Shown in pieces: positions 32,836 to 43,250 of a stretch of 64,000 nt of DNA. The number at the start of each line of letters is the position of its first letter. Within the stretch, counting starts at the first letter, position 1. A program made the position numbers and the translations under genes. This DNA comes from Anthoceros angustus. Its lineage: Eukaryota; Plantae; Anthocerotophyta. The DNA lies in contig VJWM01000117.1 of the NCBI GenBank assembly GCA_010909165.1, positions 868,001 through 932,000 on the forward strand, in the 5' to 3' direction. Under the pieces are notes generated by a model. It searched no databases, was not told the DNA's origin, and saw only the letters and a program-made list of their open reading frames with translations.

Positions 32836-34496
32836 GGCTTGTCTTGCTCCGTTGAACGAGCTGAAGTGTCTTCTTGTCTTTTCGGGCCCTCCCCTCAAAT
32901 CTATGCTTCGCGCTTCCGGGGGCTGAATTCAAAGAAAGGAAGAAAAACGGAATTATGCTAATTGGAACTATTCGACGAGTCGTGTGTCAGCTGGACACGA
33001 GACCGTCGCGTCGGTTGTCTCCTTCCCTTTGTGGCAGACAGCGCCACAATGGCCGCAGGAACAATGTGAGCACGGAAGCCCGCGGCTCGGTGTGACGAGC
33101 GCTGGCCACTCTTCACCTACGCGGCTCTGGCCTGCCACTGCTGGAACGCGCAAGCAGCTCTATCGTGTTATGTGATTGTTCCTTGCTTTTCCGACAGAGG
33201 AGGGAGCGTGTAGCTCACGATTCTCAGCTGTTGCTGCTGCAAGCATCTTGGACAAGCTCAGGAGTTGTCGGAAGCGCAGGAAATTGGATGTGGCCTGCTC
33301 TGCCGGCCTGCTTTGCCAAGAACTTGGTTACGGACAGTTACGGCTGCAGGAGCGGTGTGGTGGAATGCTCGGATAGACATTACGCTTCCGGGCTAGGTTT
33401 TTGGTTTCCATGTGTTCTCAGTCTTTGAATGTCTGTGCTCCACCCTGTGGCTTCCGCTCTGATGCCGCATCCGCACCTCACAAGTCATTCAGGAGTTAAA
33501 CGAGTGCAGTTCTGATTGTCTTTGTGGCCTGTCTGTTCCAAGTGATTCCTCAGGATCTTTGTGGTGAGAGTTGCGGGGTGTAGCTCAGGGACTGTGGTGT
33601 ACTGATGGTCAGTGGTCGCGAGCGATTCCAGTGTAGACACTGGTTCTTGTTCTGATTCGGTCAGAGAGGATTTGTCGTGCGTGCATGTCTAAAATTATGT
33701 TTCCTTCGCACCTGGTGAGGTAGGTAGGCCTTGGCTTGGCATTTGAATCGGTTTTTGGTGGCTGGCTCTTTCGTCCCTAGCAATGGAGCTGAGCGGAATT
33801 TCTCGGGCTCAGCTCCCTCGGTGCAGGACTTATGTTATTCCAGCTGGCACTGAAGTAGGGGTACCTTTTGTCACAAAGCATACAGGAAACATATGCAAAG
33901 TCGGCCCTCATAGAAACTCATTTGAAAAACATATATGGGGACCACCAGCACGCGCGAGACGACAAGGCTCCTCCCGCTTTGTACGTATTCTTCTGCCTTC
34001 AAACGTTCAAGGATTCAGAGTTACGCTTCTATAATGTCCGAGTCCTTGTCACTTATTTGTGGTCACAACGATAGTATTTGGGTTATAGATCCATCGTCGA
34101 GCTGATTATGAAGTTCTGGGAGCATATTGAAGTTGTTTGCTCACGCTGACTCCATCTTTATTCAGAAAACTTACAACAGAACCGGGTTCAGACCCATGAG
34201 CCTTGATCAAGAATGACAGATGGGACAGAAGGAGCTCTCGAGCACTCTGAGGTGGTTCTGCAAAAGCACAGGGGCTTAGCCGCTGACTGATGTCCGTTGC
34301 ACACATTACTTCATGCTAGGAATCTGAATCACTTGTCGACTCACTGGTCCATCTAACCTAAGCATGTTAATTTTACCCATTTGCTCTTCACATCTGTCTA
34401 CTGAATTTGAAGAGTCATGTTCACCATGGAGTAGTAGGAGGTGAGTCGTTTCGATACTTGATCCCATCTTCTAACACAGTGTGTTGATAATACAGG

Positions 34497-36428
34497 TCTG
34501 TGAAGCCATTCCAGTGCAAAAAGCGCCCAAGGCAGTAACGGTAACTTTTCCTTTGGAGGCTGTGCCAACAATTTCAGGTTACCTTCCTGTTAGCGACTCC
34601 AGCAGGTCCCAACTTTTCTACGTTTTCTATGAAGCAACAGATCCTCGGACCTCTCTTGTGGATGCCCCTCTCCTGCTCTGGCTTAATGGAGGCCCTGGGT
34701 GTTCAAGCCTTATTGGTTGCTTCTATGAACTTGGGCCATGGCGGTTTAGTAGAACCGGAAGTTTGCACCACAATGAATGGGCCTGGAATAACAGGTGTGT
34801 CTGGCTGTCAGACCGTTTTTTCGTTGTCGCCTGCTCGTTCTTCTACAACTTCATGGCTGATATGCTGGTCAAGTGGTTGCTTACTGACTGCTCCATCACA
34901 TTTGCAAGCGTTGCAGGTATGGAGTGCTATTTGTCGACAGTCCTGTTGGGACAGGTTTCAGCATTGCATCTTCTGATGATGATGTCCCAAAGGATCAGCA
35001 TACTGTAGCAGCCCATCTCCACCATGCGCTGTCTTCCTTTATCGCTGAAAATCCTTCATTTGAGCTGAGACCCCTTTTTTGGCCGGAGAAAGCTATGCCG
35101 GGAAGTATGTCCCGTCTCTTGCTCATTATCTGATAAACCATCCACAGCCTAAGAATCGGCACAATGTTGGCGCCCAACTTATGGGAATAGTTGTTGGAAA
35201 TGGGTTGACGCATCCACGGAGTCAGGTGATTTTGATGTCCTCTCTCCTTCTATTAAGTAGCCCTCTGAATGGCCGTCTTCACTTCTCTGTCACCCTAGTG
35301 GCAGTGTTCACGTCTATGATTCGGATTGCAGGTACAATCCCATTCAGATGTTGCTTACTGTTTCGGTCTACTTGATCAGCCACAAAAAGCACAATGCCAA
35401 AGTATGGCTGAAGAGGTTGTAGCCCTAATTGACAGGTAGATAAATCTTTCCATGGCTCTTCACGTCAAGCTCTGCGTGAATGTTGGGAACCCGCACATAA
35501 ACTCCTGTTGAGCACGTGCCTGTTTCACCTTTTCCAGGGAGAGTGGCTGAAAGCCCATGAAGCCCGAACTGCACTCGTTCAGTGGATAGAGGAAACAAGT
35601 GGGATAGCAACACTACTGGATGTCCGTCGGCTAACAAAATACCATCATTTGGAGGTAAGTTTGATATCCAGCAATATGCTGTTCTACCCAGTTGTCAAGG
35701 CAGGTGAAGTTTTGTTGAATATTGTTTACTGTTTTGGCCCTTATCACAGGATGGCAGCGAGTACTTGGCGAAATTTCTTAATGAAGCCAACGTGAAGACC
35801 CTTTTGAAAGCTGATCCTGCAGTAACGTGGGTCAGCTGTAAACAATCCATTCGTAGCTTGATGGCTGAGGTTAGTCTTCCTGTCATGCGATCTGTCTGGG
35901 CGGTGCATTTTTGATGGGTGTGTACTCACATCAGACACCTACCTTTGCAGGATACCATGAAATCTACCAAACAGCTAGTGGAAGACATTTTGGAAGCAGG
36001 GTATCCTGTTTTGTTATTTCAGGGACAGTATGATGCCAAAGATGGTCCATGTGGGTCCGAAGCATGGATGAGGATGCTTAATTGGCAGCATGGTGAACGG
36101 TTTTGGGCACAAACAAGAGAAATCTGGAGGGTGAATGGGGCACATGCCGGTTACTGGAGGCAGAACCAGAACCTCACACATGTTGTCTTTAGAGGGGCCG
36201 GACATCAGGTATAAAGGCGCTCCACTCATCGTACGCATTGCAGACTTTTGTGACTCTATGCCAGATGTTTAGGATACTCAGCATGGAAATGTCCCTAGTG
36301 TCACAGTCGGCTTGCCTCGTTCTTCGTGACCGCAGGTTCCACACGACCAGCCGCAGTCATCCCTGGTTATGATTGAGACGTGGGTTGATCAGCAACTAAA
36401 AGCCAAACAGAGGCGTGCTTTACTGTGA
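34497..36428 (+). CDS. SCPL: Serine carboxypeptidase-like (SCPL50/CPVL-type), multi-exon; first exon not located
   Basis: WLNGGPGCSS, LFVDSPVGTGFS, GESYAGKYVP (catalytic Ser), QGQYDAKD (Asp) and GAGHQVPHDQP (His). One 1-bp T-run frameshift lies at ~35075. Confidence 0.9.
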
Positions 36429-36775
36429 AAGAGGGTCTTGCTCGATGGACCCAATTTGGTGAGACACAACTCCAGTTTGTCCCCAAGTAGTCTGGAGCAG
36501 AAGTTGTGCATCTATTCTTGGGGTTAGAGATGGCGTTTGAGTTCATCTCAATTTCGAACTCTGCCATCATAATTAAAGACAAACCCAAACTAAGTAAAGT
36601 CATCAGCTTAAACTACAGCAAAGCTTTCATTTCAGCCCGCAACAAAGCTTGCCCCCAAAAGACTGTCCAATTGCTCGGCAAAAAGAAAAACTATCAATGG
36701 CACAGGCGACCAGGTCCATCAAGAAGTTCAGTCACGAACCAGGACACGGGTGAAACAGCTGTCGTTACTCCAGGG

Positions 36776-38718
36776 TTAGTGCTTAAACGACTGCTGCGAA
36801 GAATGCTTCACAAACCACTCTCCAAAAGGTGACGGTCTGCGGAGAAGAGCTCGTCGGCAAGACGCGTAGAGTTGAGCGGAATCCTGTCATGACAATCACG
36901 TTCACTGAGTGAGGGAGCTGGAGAGAAGCACAATGTGAAGTGCGGGTGAACCTAGTTGTGTATTCAAATGCAACCTTCATCTCCTGGTAGGCAGAATCAC
37001 AGAAGTCTGTACGAGACAAGAAGTGCGGCATGAGCGAAAGGAAACAGGAAAGAAGCTGTCTCCTGCACAGTAAGCAGCGTGTGAGTTCAGTGTTCATAAC
37101 AACTCCAGCAGCCCTTGTGACAAAAGTTGCATCCACTTCACCGGCATTCCATGAGCCACAGTGAGGAGAGTTTACTTGCAAATCTTCGATTGAGTAGCAG
37201 GAGAAAGTGCACCCTTGGACGATGTTCCTTGCTTCCGCCCGGTAGTTCCCAGGATCACATCATGCAAACCTGCCTTGTTCCAACTTATGGAGTACCTGAA
37301 CCAAGCAACCCAGCCAGCAAGCAAGCGATATGACATGAATAAAACATCGCCCGTCAAGAAGTACAGGTACAACAGCACAATCCAAGGTTGTGTGCGACTA
37401 GACCCGACCCGCAGGTTGGAACCAAGCAGTTACCGACAGGCTGCCGGAACTCGCTGGGAGCCAGGGGGGCCTTGAAGGTAGCCGGCTGAATCAGCTTGAA
37501 AGGAGCAAGAAAGGTGTCGGCAAAAGGAACAAGACGGCCATGAACAGCTCGCTTCAATGCTTCCAACGCAAGCCGGCTACACTCGGAGTCCGGACCGTGC
37601 AGACCATTGCCAGAGCACCCATCCACAGCCACTGATATGGACGAAAGATATATAGGCTCCGCGACGAAGTGCATGAGAAGAGCTCCTGTCCACACCAATT
37701 CCAAGCTCTTTGCTTCACAGAGCATTTCAAACACCAGACGAACCACCACAGCACACAGAACAGCACCAAACCCCGACGCAAACGGATCGCAAAATCAAAG
37801 CTCCAACCTTGCAGGCCAAGCACATTCCAGCGCGCAATCTTATCACTGCAGCTCATGCACAGAGTGGTCTCTCCACGCCCCGGCTTCCTGCGCACCACTC
37901 CCGTCTCCTGACACGCAGATGTCGACGCTGCACCATAGCCGAGGCATCCACAGCAGGGAAATATGCAAGCATCCCCGCACGGCAACTGGCTGATGTAGAG
38001 ATGGAACCGCAGTCCTCGCCGCAGCCTACACCCGCTCCTCTGCCCTTGCTCCGCAGTCTCCACAAGCTCGAAAATGGATCCGCCATCGCCGTCACACAAG
38101 CGCTCGATCTCCGAATAGAAATACCTGCCGCCGCACCAGCAACGAATTTAGACTCCCGCCTCCTGTCCCTCCTCCTCCTCCAGCTTCCTGCTTCACGACC
38201 CGACCGCAGCATCAGCGAAGATCAAGAGAAGAAAATTCCCACCGGAGCAGAGCCCGGCGGGCTATCACTTCCGCGTGCGAGTCGTGAACCACGTCTCCAA
38301 GCTCGCTCAGACGCGACCACCCGAGGCACTTGGTTCCGGTTCCCAGAGTCACCACCTCCACCGAGCCTGAGTCGTGCGGGTCGCGGTTTGAGACGTGGTT
38401 GGAGACGCTGTTGGAGTCCAGGTTGGAGACGCTTGATGAGTCGTGGGAGTCGCGGTTGGAGACGTGGTTGGAGACGTCGTTGCCCTCTCTAGACCTCTGC
38501 TCAGTCGTTGGCTTGGCGGAGACGCTGTTGGCGACGCTGGTGGAGACGCTGCGGGGGGACCCGGGGTTGGAGACGCTCGAGTCGTGGGAGTCGCGGGACA
38601 GAAGGAAGGCGGCCAGGACGGTGATCTCCTTGCCCTGCGGTTTGCCCTTGTTCGGCAGGGATCGGTATCGCTCGAGCGCGAGGCGAGCCACAGTGGTGCC
38701 CCAGAGCTCTGCGGCCAT
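36776..38718 (-). CDS. TAD1: tRNA-specific adenosine deaminase 1 (ADAT1/TAD1)
   Basis: [40 protein letters not shown] (HAE), [53 protein letters not shown] and C-terminal FGEWFVK..*. Confidence 0.92.
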
Positions 38719-39426
38719 GGCGGCTGCCTCGGCGGCTGCTGTCGCGTTTATTCTCCTGCTCCTGCTGGCTTCCGGTGCGGATTGCGCGGCATCCAGGCAG
38801 CAGCAGCAGCAGCAAGACGGGGCGGCTACCTGGTTGAGGGCCGGGTGCGGGTGGAGGCCTTAGCCGACAAGGTAGCGGCTTCCGTCAAGCTTCTGCTGAA
38901 CGGGGGCCAACGGGTGACATTTCTGCAGCCAGACGGCTACTTCGCCTTCCATGGCGTGCCTCCGGGAACCCATCTCCTGGAGGTTGCGGCGCCGGGATAC
39001 TCCTTTGCCCCGGTGCGGCTGGATGTGAGCGAGAGGCTTCGGGGAGATGTGCATGCCATCTACACCGAGACTCGGCGGATCCTGCCGGACCCTCTGCTGC
39101 TGGATCCGGCTCAGGTGGAGCAGTACTACGAGAAGCGGGAGCCGTTTTCTGTGCTGGGTCTGCTCAAGAGCCCCATGGGGCTCATGGTTGGCTTCATGGG
39201 TTTGGCAGTGTTCGTTTTGCCTAAGCTTATGGACAGCGTGGGTGGGTATTGCTTAGCTTTCGATGGTGTCTGGATCGGGTGCATGCCACAAACCCTAGTC
39301 ACGGATCTCACTCTCGCTTGTTTCGTTGTGTGATCAGATCCAGAGGAGATGAAGAGAGTACAGGAGGAGTTGCGGAACAGGCCGGCCCCATCCTTTAGCA
39401 ACCTTCTACAAGGACGAAGCTCTTGA
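38717..39426 (+). CDS. EMC7: ER membrane protein complex subunit 7
   Basis: Signal peptide [20 protein letters not shown]; VKLLLNGGQRVTFLQPDGYFAFHGVPPGTHLLEV..GY.FAPVRLDVS; QYYEKREPFSVLGLLKSPMGLMVGF..LPKLM|DPEEMK. One intron and one G-run frameshift at ~38820. Confidence 0.9.
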
Positions 39427-40255
39427 CACATGACAAGACCCACCTGTGTTGCTCACCCCTGTGTTTGTGCAAGGGAAGGGATGGTTTGAGGCATCCAGTA
39501 CTTTGTATGAATTGTGGGATTGGATCCCCCACATCCACATCGGGTTTCGACGAATTCTTTTCCTGGAATTTCTCGTCTCCAGGATACTGTGGTATGTTTG
39601 ATACAGGCTTTGTTCGTGACGACGTGCCAACCCTGGGGACATCGTGGCATCACAGGCCAGAGTATGTAGGCTCGACGGGCTGCAGTGCTTACATTCGTAA
39701 ATTGTTATCTGTATCAGCATTGCAGCTACAGTACAAACGATGTTGGACTGGACATGATAATATGTACTGTTCACTACATGGAATGAACCTGTCCACACAG
39801 AAGTGTTTACAAAAGTTGTTCATCCTTGAATGAGGCGCATCCCTCCGAAAAAGAAGTTTTGGAGGCTTTCCTTGTCTACTCCCAGAGATACCCTTCAGCC
39901 AGTTATTACCCGGTCAGACTCTGCTGGCAGCGATTCCTTCCCAATGAGGGGCGGAACTCAAGCCACGAGGCCTTTTTCGACTGCCTGGGACAGGTTCATA
40001 TGAAACCAGTACATATTTAATGAGTGGACTGTTTGCGTACGCCACCACCAGCTGGTCATGGGCTGCCAGGATTCCTTTCCTTAATCACAGTGATTATGGG
40101 TCTGTAATTGGGATGCACACAACGTGCGAGTCTTCACGCAATTATTGGTAGAGTCAAGTGGGCTCGTCTTGTGGGGAAGATGTGATACATATTCCAGCAT
40201 TCCAAATCGTTTTGTTCCTTTCTCTCAGTTCTCCAGCGGAGTGGAGATTCTGGCG

Positions 40256-43250
40256 ATGGCGGATTTGGAGCAGCCCCTGCTGCGTACCAAAAAGGTGTTC
40301 CCCGACTGCCCTGGATGCAAAGTTGCCCAGCGAGTAGCCGCCAGTAAATCTCCTCCGTATTCGCAGCTGCTCTTTGTGGCCCTCATCATCTTCTGCAATG
40401 GTGAGCACCTCTGTCCGCAGAATGTGTGGGATCTGGCAATCGATGCCAGCAGCTGTGAAGCTCATGCTGATCCGTGCCGATATCGTGCTTTACTGCAGCA
40501 ATGCCCACTACCTCCCTGTTCCCTTATGTCTACTTCATGGTACAGTTTCCTACCGCCCACTTGGAGCAAGTCTTGCACATTGCTGTCAGTGTTTCATGAT
40601 TGAGTTGATGCAGGTCAAGGATTTCAACGTCGCTGGAAGAGACGAAGATATTGGTATCTACGCTGGATTGTTAGGTATGCCGTCCCAGTCCATTGGCTCC
40701 GAGCTGCTGCCAGCCCTTTCCTGTTCTGTGCTGTGCTGCGCTTTGCTGAGAATGCAATGCTGGGTGGCCTCCAGGCTCGTCATTCATGTTCGGGAGGTTC
40801 TTGAGCTCCTGGCAGTGGGGCATTTGGTCTGACAAATATGGCAGGAGGCCCATCATCCTCATAGGTCTCGCTTCCATGTGAGTGCAGCAGTCCAGCTGTA
40901 TTCCTTAATGCCTTGCGGATTTCCACCAGGAAGGAATATAACCGACGGCAAATGCTGGTGCAGAGCTATTTTTAACTTGCTGTTTGGAGCAAGCTCCAAT
41001 TACTGGATGGCCCTCACCTGCCGCCTGCTACTCGGTCTCCTCAATGGCTCGTTTGGGCCCGCGAAGGTGGGAGAATCTGATGAACCGGTTGCTTCGACTT
41101 TTGCACATTGACTTATATCAGAAGGCATTTCAACGGAAGGTGCTTATTGCGCAGGTCTTCGCATCGGAGGTTTGCAATGATCAGCAGCAAGCCCTCAGTG
41201 TGTCAGTTGTGAGTAATCCAACCCAGTTCTTCGTCTGCTGGTTTTGCGTGTTTCCGTCCAGAAGTTATAGTGTTCATGGCTGCCGAGCTGATCCCGTCAG
41301 ATAAGAGACCGTCCGTCCTTACTTGCGTGACTGTGCAGGTAGGTACGTCATGGGGCCTAGGCTTAATCGTTGGCCCTGCGATTGGGGGATATCTCGCACG
41401 GGTGAGCTAGGCTGCTGGGTTGTCGAAGGTTGCTGCACACTCCCGTCTCTGGTCGTCATTCCGCCCATTTGTTTGTAAGACATCTCGTATGGGACGCTTG
41501 TGCAGCCATCTTTGAGCTATCCTGACCTGTTCCCTCCCGGCTCCTTCTTCGATCGGTAAGTCACACTGATCCAAGACCTGCCAGCGAGCTTTGCCAGGGA
41601 ATGGAGCTCACCACGGTCTGTTGTGCAGTGCAGCTACCCATATCTGCTGCCCTCTATTGTCGCCGCTGTTACTGCTACCGTGGGAGCCATCATAACAACT
41701 CAGCTTCCAGTTACGTTGTCCTCCAGACTCAGTACCGTCTTCCAGACTAGAATGCAGATTGATGCTAGTTGTTTCTGAAGTGATTAAACTGTGCAGGAGA
41801 CCCTCCATTTCCATGAAGATGCACCCAAGCTTGCCGTTACCTACGATGATGTAGGAAAGACGGAAGCCGCAGGGTTCAATGACGAGGACATTGTCCCGGT
41901 TTCAGACGCCCAAATCGTGGAACATTCACCACCTAAGGTGAAGAAATCGGCATGGGCTTTGTTCAAGAACTACCCATTGCTGGCTTCGATTTATGTCTTC
42001 TCCATATGGGCGCTGTTCGAGGTTTCCTTCACAGAAGTAGGTCAATTCCACTCCCGCCTTGCCACATTGTCTGCCTGCTGTGGACTTGGCAAGCTTGGCA
42101 TTAAAGTACCTTGCTCTTCAGTGTTTTTCTTTCTGGGCACTGAGTCCAAAAAATATTGGAGGGCTGGGTTTTACATCCGTTCAAGTTGGAAACATTTTAA
42201 CCGTCTCAGGTACAGCCACCTACCTGCTGCTGTTTCTGTTTTTCAACTATGCTTGGTCTATATCTGAAGCCACTGTTCGATCCGCGTGTGCTAGGTTTTG
42301 GGTTGCTGTTTTGGCAGCTTTTTGTCTTCCCTCCTGTAACCAATTACCTTGGACCCAGTAAAGTCATTCGATTATCTGCTGTAAGACTCCTTGTTGTCAG
42401 GTTGCTGTTCTTCTGCTGTAAACTGTGGCATGTTAGTTTCTGGCTTGTTTGTGGCATCTCATCTAACATTGCCACGGTCTACATTTGTTTTCTGCTGTTG
42501 AAATCCGCTGCTTGTAACATTGCTCAATGGATGCAGCTTCTAGCATTGCCCACGATGGTTTTATTTCCGCTGGCAGGCCAACTGGTGGGCGTCCCTACGT
42601 TCCTACTCATTCTTTTGATATCACTGTACAAGAATATCGCATCGGTGAGGACCCTCATTTACAGCAGAGTGTCCATTCCTAGCAGCAAAGTTGTCATTTG
42701 GAACCGAGCATCTGAGGCTGTGTCATCGCTTTCCTCGCTTCTGTGATAGACTTCAACCATGGACGGAGCATTTCTACTCGTCAACAATGCTGTGGTAACT
42801 GATCTCGATCTGACCAATCTGGTGCATGCCGTGCAGCTTCTCTAGCGCTTGCATCCTGAACCCATGCCATGTGGCTTTTCCTATGATCAGAAACCGAGTG
42901 AAAGAGGTGCAGCAAACGGTCTAGCAGTCAGTACGATGGCTTTGACGACTACCATCGCTCCAGAGACTGGAGGGCTACTGTACGTGGTTCTTGATCACAG
43001 GCTTGTGACAGAATTTTATGGAAGCATGTACTTGGGTCGTAATTTAGTGATCTCGTGTCGTCTTGGCGCAGGTTCTCTTGGGCTCTGAGTCGAAATTCTG
43101 ATTTCCTCCCTGGTACAGTGAAGACTTCATTACCCTTAAGCTTCCCAGTCTATCATGAATTTGTTTTCGGGGCCAGCATGATATCATTTTTACAGTGATG
43201 ATCATCTGTCATGGCTGTGCAGGACCTTCTCTCGTCTTTTTTGTCTTGGG
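40256..43250 (+). CDS. ZIFL: Zinc-induced facilitator-like MFS transporter, many exons; 3' end approximate
   Basis: PDCPGCK, SLFPYVYFM, DEDIGIYAG, WGIWSDKYGRRPII, LLGLLNGSFGPAK, WGLGLIVGPAIGGYLA, ETLH, GGLGFTS and ERGAANG. Confidence 0.88.

Follow-up and report, generated by a model that had tools for sequence, protein, structure and literature searches.

A probable head-to-head TAD1-EMC7 gene pair with overlapping start codons in Anthoceros angustus, and a one-base frame break in EMC7 that is most likely an assembly error

Can two conserved nuclear genes start in opposite directions from within the same eight bases? The question is raised by a stretch of 64,000 nucleotides from the hornwort Anthoceros angustus (GenBank assembly GCA_010909165.1, contig VJWM01000117.1, positions 868,001 to 932,000; hereafter the window, numbered from its first letter), in which the candidate start codons of TAD1/ADAT1 on the minus strand and of EMC7 on the plus strand overlap. 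Direct reading of the plus strand from 38711 to 38724 gives GCGGCCATGGCGGC, within which lies the 8-nt exact palindrome GCCATGGC (38714-38721) that contains both candidate start codons: the EMC7 ATG occupies 38717-38719 on the plus strand and the TAD1 ATG 38718-38716 on the minus strand, with bases 38717-38718 common to both. Each of the two ATGs has a G at −3 and a G at +4. The palindrome with its overlapping ATGs, as well as a strong initiation context on both strands, had been described in a sequence-only reading of the window, and both descriptions are borne out by the letters. In this layout the 5′ ends of two protein-coding genes, one on each strand, face each other with zero spacer. A motif count found four copies of GCCATGGC in the window versus 1.45 expected; because 11 of 100 shuffles also reach four copies, the motif by itself is not unusual, and the point of interest is whether both ATGs are true gene starts, rather than the rarity of the motif. 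We consider that TAD1 and EMC7 are probably a real and extreme head-to-head gene pair, of a kind of arrangement that is already known, and we give a probability of roughly one half to the complete reading, namely a divergent pair of small housekeeping genes with start codons overlapping by two bases, both genes intact, and a break in the EMC7 reading frame that is an assembly error.

The minus-strand gene (approximately 36786-38718, a span of about 1.9 kb, delimited by matches to the Pfam family A_deamin and by open reading frames, ORFs) is, by its family, TAD1/ADAT1, the tRNA A37 deaminase, and would be expected to convert A37 of tRNA-Ala to inosine. Its exon-1 ORF of 168 codons (38212-38718; defined from the ORF, Pfam and an alignment of homologues, alignment A2) contains the LP.KGKPQG motif, a low-complexity insert, GTGTKC and the HAE catalytic motif, and matches A_deamin (PF02137) at profile positions 2-43 with an E-value of 1.4e-13; the true splice donor of this exon is probably near 38246. 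The rest of the exons, with their introns, occupy 36786-38211 and were recognized from Pfam matches on four further ORF pieces, reaching down to about 36786, and from their translations. These pieces take the A_deamin coverage to 309/329, the five pieces together spanning profile positions 2-309. HAE, PCGD and SCSDK, the motifs for zinc binding and catalysis, can all be read in the TAD1 translations, and the matched segment aligns with the ADAR1 and ADAR2 deaminase-domain chains in the PDB. The N-terminus is of the ADAT1 type, free of double-stranded RNA (dsRNA)-binding domains, as seen in alignment A2 and in the names of the hits, and the word-search matches to exon 1 bear the name tRNA-specific adenosine deaminase 1/TAD1.

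The same alignment defines where a TAD1 protein is expected to begin. The family N-terminus consists of Met, 0-25 variable residues and then W-G..V....Y.SLP.KGKPQG.E.TVLAAFL, with S20, L21, P22, G25, G29, E31, T33 and L35 invariant. The Met of the window TAD1 lies five residues before the conserved Trp, the same distance as in homolog P0134, and in the fish ADAT1 (P0158) the Trp directly follows the Met. The start codon (38716-38718) is the first in-frame ATG after a stop located 47 codons upstream. Alternative TAD1 starts were sought and rejected: because exon 1 has no internal Met and the stretch back to the upstream stop has no ATG, the ATG at 38718 is the sole credible TAD1 start; only an unseen coding exon farther upstream, for which the family gives no reason, would change this.

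Other land-plant TAD1 proteins have the same N-terminal LP.KGKPQG motif and A_deamin domain; among the sequences of alignment A2, the window TAD1 alone carries an insert of 76 residues (codons at 38368-38595, minus strand), rich in Ser, Asn, Val, Asp and His and encoded by 12-nt tandem repeats detected with Tandem Repeats Finder (TRF). It sits between the LLS and VVxLGTGTKC motifs, where angiosperm TAD1 genes carry an intron. That the insert is itself an in-frame intron appears unlikely, as its GC content at third codon positions (GC3, 0.89) and a repeat unit of exactly four codons favour coding sequence. The plus-strand GC skew switches from about −0.3 to +0.24 near 38200-38350, inside TAD1 exon 1 and about 400 nt before the shared start, and the C-rich codons of the insert may be the sole cause of this switch. 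On the other side of the start, an ORF reading of the TAD1 strand gives an upstream ORF of 14 codons (38748-38792), which runs antisense to the codons of the EMC7 leader; it ends 30 nt before the TAD1 ATG and matters only if the TAD1 transcription start site (TSS) lies more than 74 nt upstream.

The plus-strand gene (38717-39426, a span of 710 nt, from Pfam PF09430 and tblastn) is, judging from its domain and tail, EMC7, a subunit of the endoplasmic reticulum membrane complex. Positions 38797-39246 match the EMC7_beta-sandw family (PF09430) with an E-value of 8e-23 and 81 bits (cut-off 26.6), covering profile positions 7-122 of 122. Identity to named land-plant EMC7 proteins is 55-66%, and the best matches come from seed-free land plants (Diphasiastrum with 66%, liverworts and some transcript contigs with 62-64%). 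The body of exon 1, encoding the β-sandwich and the transmembrane helix, occupies 38824-39241 according to the Pfam match and is followed by a 96-nt GT...AG intron (39242-39337), identified by reading the sequence and from the tblastn alignment. Exon 2 (39338-39426, by the same two means) encodes the conserved DPEEMK...LLQGR tail and ends with a TGA at 39424-39426. The C-terminal transmembrane helix and this tail are both recognized in an alignment of EMC7 homologues (alignment A1) and by tblastn across the intron. Other land-plant EMC7 proteins have the same architecture of leader, β-sandwich, transmembrane helix and DPEEMK tail.

The start of EMC7 is less straightforward. The ATG at 38717 is the only one in its frame (frame A) after the upstream stop, and it opens the only signal-peptide-like leader, some 26 codons long and with a hydrophobic core rich in Ala and Leu (38717-38794; translation and alignment A1), but this frame ends at a TAG (38861-38863) after 48 codons. 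The EMC7 domain is in the frame of 38716 (frame B), which is open back to 38443 and has no ATG before the domain. Because the frame of the ATG differs from that of the domain, the EMC7 ORF is interrupted in this assembly, and the signal peptide is not continuous with the domain. This break, about 100 nt into the gene, was overlooked by the sequence-only reading, whose placement of the EMC7 start at 38717 is upheld as far as the leader is concerned and fails in its continuity with the EMC7 domain. Its statement that both Met positions fit their families agrees with the alignments, with the TAD1 Met just ahead of the conserved Trp and the EMC7 ATG opening the leader. All aligned full-length EMC7 homologues have a hydrophobic N-terminal leader and, about 10 residues later, GY.(V/I).GR(V/I). 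Since every one of them has a hydrophobic leader at this place, the leader from 38717 is by comparison clearly the native EMC7 leader, and a correction of +1 nt is required within approximately 38795-38826.

This zone, delimited by the reading frames, codon GC and TRF, holds a perfect (CAG)6/(GCA)6 run at 38797-38814 and a GGGG run at 38819-38822. The triplet repeat reads as poly-Gln in the ATG frame and as poly-Ala in the domain frame, and no such run is found in the aligned EMC7 homologues. GC content at the three codon positions of the linker is 0.9/0.3/0.9 in frame A versus 0.9/1.0/0.3 in frame B, compared with 0.72/0.39/0.76 for the gene body; as the linker resembles the gene body in frame A, the break would fall after the CAG repeat, at or near GGGG. 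At the corresponding position the EMC7 relative P0005 has ARQPDGY, which agrees with ...SRQ(n)DG in the ATG frame joined to GY... in the domain frame, and the GGGG run is probably the likeliest break site on these grounds. With one base added, the EMC7 coding sequence amounts to 615 nt, that is, 204 codons and a stop, and the family range is about 197-219 residues.

Repair of the frame by splicing was considered by enumerating all GT/GC...AG pairs of the right length class in 38717-38845. The pairs that keep the leader delimit introns of only 23-38 nt, below spliceosomal intron size, and the longer frame-repairing introns (53-119 nt) remove the leader or part of the conserved start of the domain, most of them with GC donors. 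A leader exon farther upstream, with the AG at 38796 as acceptor, was also rejected, with no ATG-started hydrophobic exon with a GT donor present in 36215-38716; all 20 candidate upstream leader exons are inside or beyond the neighbouring serine carboxypeptidase gene. A different start in the domain frame was discarded as well, there being no ATG from 38443 to the domain.

A close examination of that neighbouring gene (approximately 34481-36214, plus strand; Pfam S10 and ORF positions), which is not part of the pair and serves here as a control, revealed a comparable defect. The Pfam S10 match at profile positions 88-139 ends at about nt 35079 in one frame and that at positions 141-190 begins at nt 35082 in another, which leaves no room for an intron at a frame switch located 3.6 kb from the TAD1-EMC7 junction. 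The change of frame coincides with a T6 run (35075-35080) at the GESYAG catalytic motif, and one more T in this run restores ...RPLFLAGESYAGKYVP, the motif of the catalytic serine; to judge from the sequence, the switch is probably an assembly deletion error. Two conserved genes in the window therefore each need exactly one extra base, the carboxypeptidase in a homopolymer and EMC7 likeliest in a homopolymer, and such paired one-base breaks are a signature of deletion-type consensus errors. With the neighbouring carboxypeptidase broken in the same one-base fashion, loss of a base from the assembly is also the likeliest cause in EMC7, and we infer that its frame break is most likely a one-base assembly deletion, not biology. 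For published hornwort assemblies of comparable size, which need not include the present one, the starting material was Nanopore R9 reads, polished with Pilon (PMC8075897). The practical value of these findings at present is a warning that one-base deletions occur in coding exons here, as in EMC7 and the carboxypeptidase, and that gene models and “unusual” features taken from the raw sequence of this genome call for read-level checks.

If both starts are used, any 5′ untranslated region (UTR) is antisense to the coding sequence of the partner. The claim of the sequence-only reading that there is no intergenic DNA stands under that same provision; introns in the 5′ UTRs or a deletion in the assembly would void the consequences drawn from it, and promoters within an exon of the partner, mRNAs complementary at their 5′ ends, dsRNA and polymerase collision would all be consequences that the layout suggests by logic. 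In the reading with both genes intact, each gene would be driven by a TATA-less bidirectional promoter region within the GC-rich first exons. Transcription of EMC7 would then begin antisense to TAD1 exon 1, and that of TAD1 antisense to the region encoding the EMC7 signal peptide, and the two mRNAs would have short complementary 5′ ends. The stretch of the TAD1 insert would have to accommodate an EMC7 promoter or 5′ UTR. No ATG occurs on the plus strand in the 278 nt upstream of the EMC7 start (as in 4.6% of shuffles), and on the TAD1 strand the 71 nt upstream of the TAD1 start are likewise without one, with the 14-codon upstream ORF beyond; these ATG-free runs are compatible with leaders free of upstream ATGs for both genes. 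In our own reading of the letters, a pyrimidine-rich stretch at about 38627-38655 of the plus strand runs antisense to the codons for the conserved KGKPQGKE, and we presume that it could be a candidate plant Y-patch for EMC7.

Taken at its fullest, the head-to-head reading would have each promoter and 5′ UTR written in the N-terminal coding sequence of the partner, in the KGKPQG region and the repeat insert on the TAD1 side and in the signal peptide on the EMC7 side. The most unusual version would be near-leaderless, with very short, TISU-like 5′ UTRs (see below) starting a few bases from the palindrome, and the same dozen bases would set the start of both transcription and translation of both genes. 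That the layout is real and both genes work, with one 8-bp palindrome providing the initiation context of two conserved genes and no DNA between them, is a tentative claim that we place somewhat short of probable.

Several observations weigh against the intact pair. The other intergenic gaps in the neighbourhood are about 500-800 nt, judged from ORF positions, and because of this the zero spacing between TAD1 and EMC7 is a local outlier, which in an error-prone assembly also fits a missing stretch. It may also be that the EMC7 frame is truly broken. The runs free of ATG are in part explained by the GC3-rich codons of the opposite strand. Word searches and a metagenome scan, in which the exons and frames were searched separately, found no DNA or transcript of the same species or a close relative, and no second assembly. 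The exact TAD1 exon-1 ORF is not on record in an exact-ORF look-up; word searches with TAD1 exon 1, the EMC7 exon and the domain-frame ORF of 296 codons gave no match that exceeded 66% identity across the greater part of the query, and the metagenome scan returned distant EMC7 loci only.

Conservation of the arrangement adds to the points on this side. A check of related genomes had been proposed together with the original claim, and EMC7 and TAD1 turn out not to lie next to each other in Marchantia, in Ceratodon or at 25 further EMC7 loci. Because no TAD1-like sequence is present at any of the 28 loci, the adjacency is, on these loci, lineage-specific, and conservation lends no support. In Marchantia a purple acid phosphatase gene lies upstream of EMC7 on the same strand, in Ceratodon an unrelated gene of 116 amino acids takes this place, and in Ceratopteris EMC7 has no called neighbour within 8 kb. 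The transcript contig L002 (run SRR33208242) encodes the EMC7 relative P0005, which has several lineage-specific residues in common with the window EMC7; the approximately 320 nt upstream of its likely ATG (L002:1-323) have no TAD1 similarity. On this contig the gene caller began the ORF at an upstream TTG.

The zero spacing could have arisen in the assembly, if a bidirectional intergenic promoter of a few hundred bases was lost when the consensus or collapsed reads jumped between two direct copies of GCCATGGC on the plus strand, one at each start codon, which would have removed the spacer together with both 5′ UTRs. One-base errors within 100 nt of the junction and 3.6 kb away speak for this, as does the width of the neighbouring gaps, and a single shared palindrome is exactly what a jump from one palindromic Kozak context to the other would produce. 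The region is, however, unique and gene-rich rather than a repeat mosaic, 8 nt of microhomology is short for a consensus error, and the sequence bears no mark of a junction, so we hold such a loss to be unlikely. Unlikelier still is a real arrangement with a genuine frameshift, in which EMC7 has recently been disabled as a young pseudogene, its leader uncoupled, and only TAD1 is functional. Two working promoters would then not be required, and a genuine deletion fusing the starts could have taken promoters away; the ORF is indeed broken as assembled, and no EMC7 transcript product of the same species turned up in the two length ranges searched. A single break in 615 nt nevertheless leaves exon 2, the splice sites, the invariant residues and the codon bias intact, and the similar break at the carboxypeptidase catalytic motif points to assembly error.

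A further possibility is a variant of the head-to-head reading, in which both starts are right and one or both genes have an intron in the 5′ UTR, with a non-coding first exon beyond the partner gene. With spans of only 710 nt for EMC7 and about 1.9 kb for TAD1, one gene could then be nested in the leader intron of the other, and the mature mRNAs would have little or no complementary exon sequence. AG dinucleotides do occur 5-13 nt upstream of each ATG, and about 500-800 nt of non-coding DNA is available beyond each partner gene, but the candidate acceptors lack polypyrimidine tracts, and of the alternatives considered we give this one the smallest weight.

The divergent TAD1/EMC7 pair can be compared with head-to-head 5′-overlapping pairs and bidirectional promoters such as human INO80E/HIRIP3 (PMC11890862), which likewise have opposite strands and facing 5′ ends, and in which an overlap of transcripts is expected. 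In the pairs on record the overlap is mainly between extended 5′ UTRs, whereas in TAD1/EMC7 it would be between the initiation codons themselves. The site also resembles the short-5′-UTR translation initiator (TISU), with the plus strand GGCCATGGCGGC having 8/8 bases of the ATGGCGGC core. The genes that carry TISU are housekeeping genes, the median length of their 5′ UTRs being 12 nt, and the element has a role in transcription as well as in translation; it was described in mammals, with YY1 (PMC3177215). A TISU-like element would be one way to live without a spacer and is offered as a lead only. Against the TISU consensus SAASATGGCGGC the plus strand scores 10/12 and the minus strand 9/12, with the A at −3/−2 replaced by G/C on both strands, so that the full consensus is absent. 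In a GC-rich gene ATGGCGGC is simply Met-Ala-Ala, and a literature search found no plant evidence for the element.

If true, the arrangement would be a natural limiting case of the bidirectional promoter, with two conserved nuclear genes and no intergenic DNA, and with promoter, leader and coding information superimposed on both strands. It would also give a compact system in which to study how plants cope with transcriptional interference and with antisense overlap at 5′ ends. Downstream of EMC7, the next gene lies on the plus strand from approximately 40230 (ORF; 40230-40600 viewed), begins with MADLEQPLL...CPGCK, and may be a ZIF-like transporter of the major facilitator superfamily.

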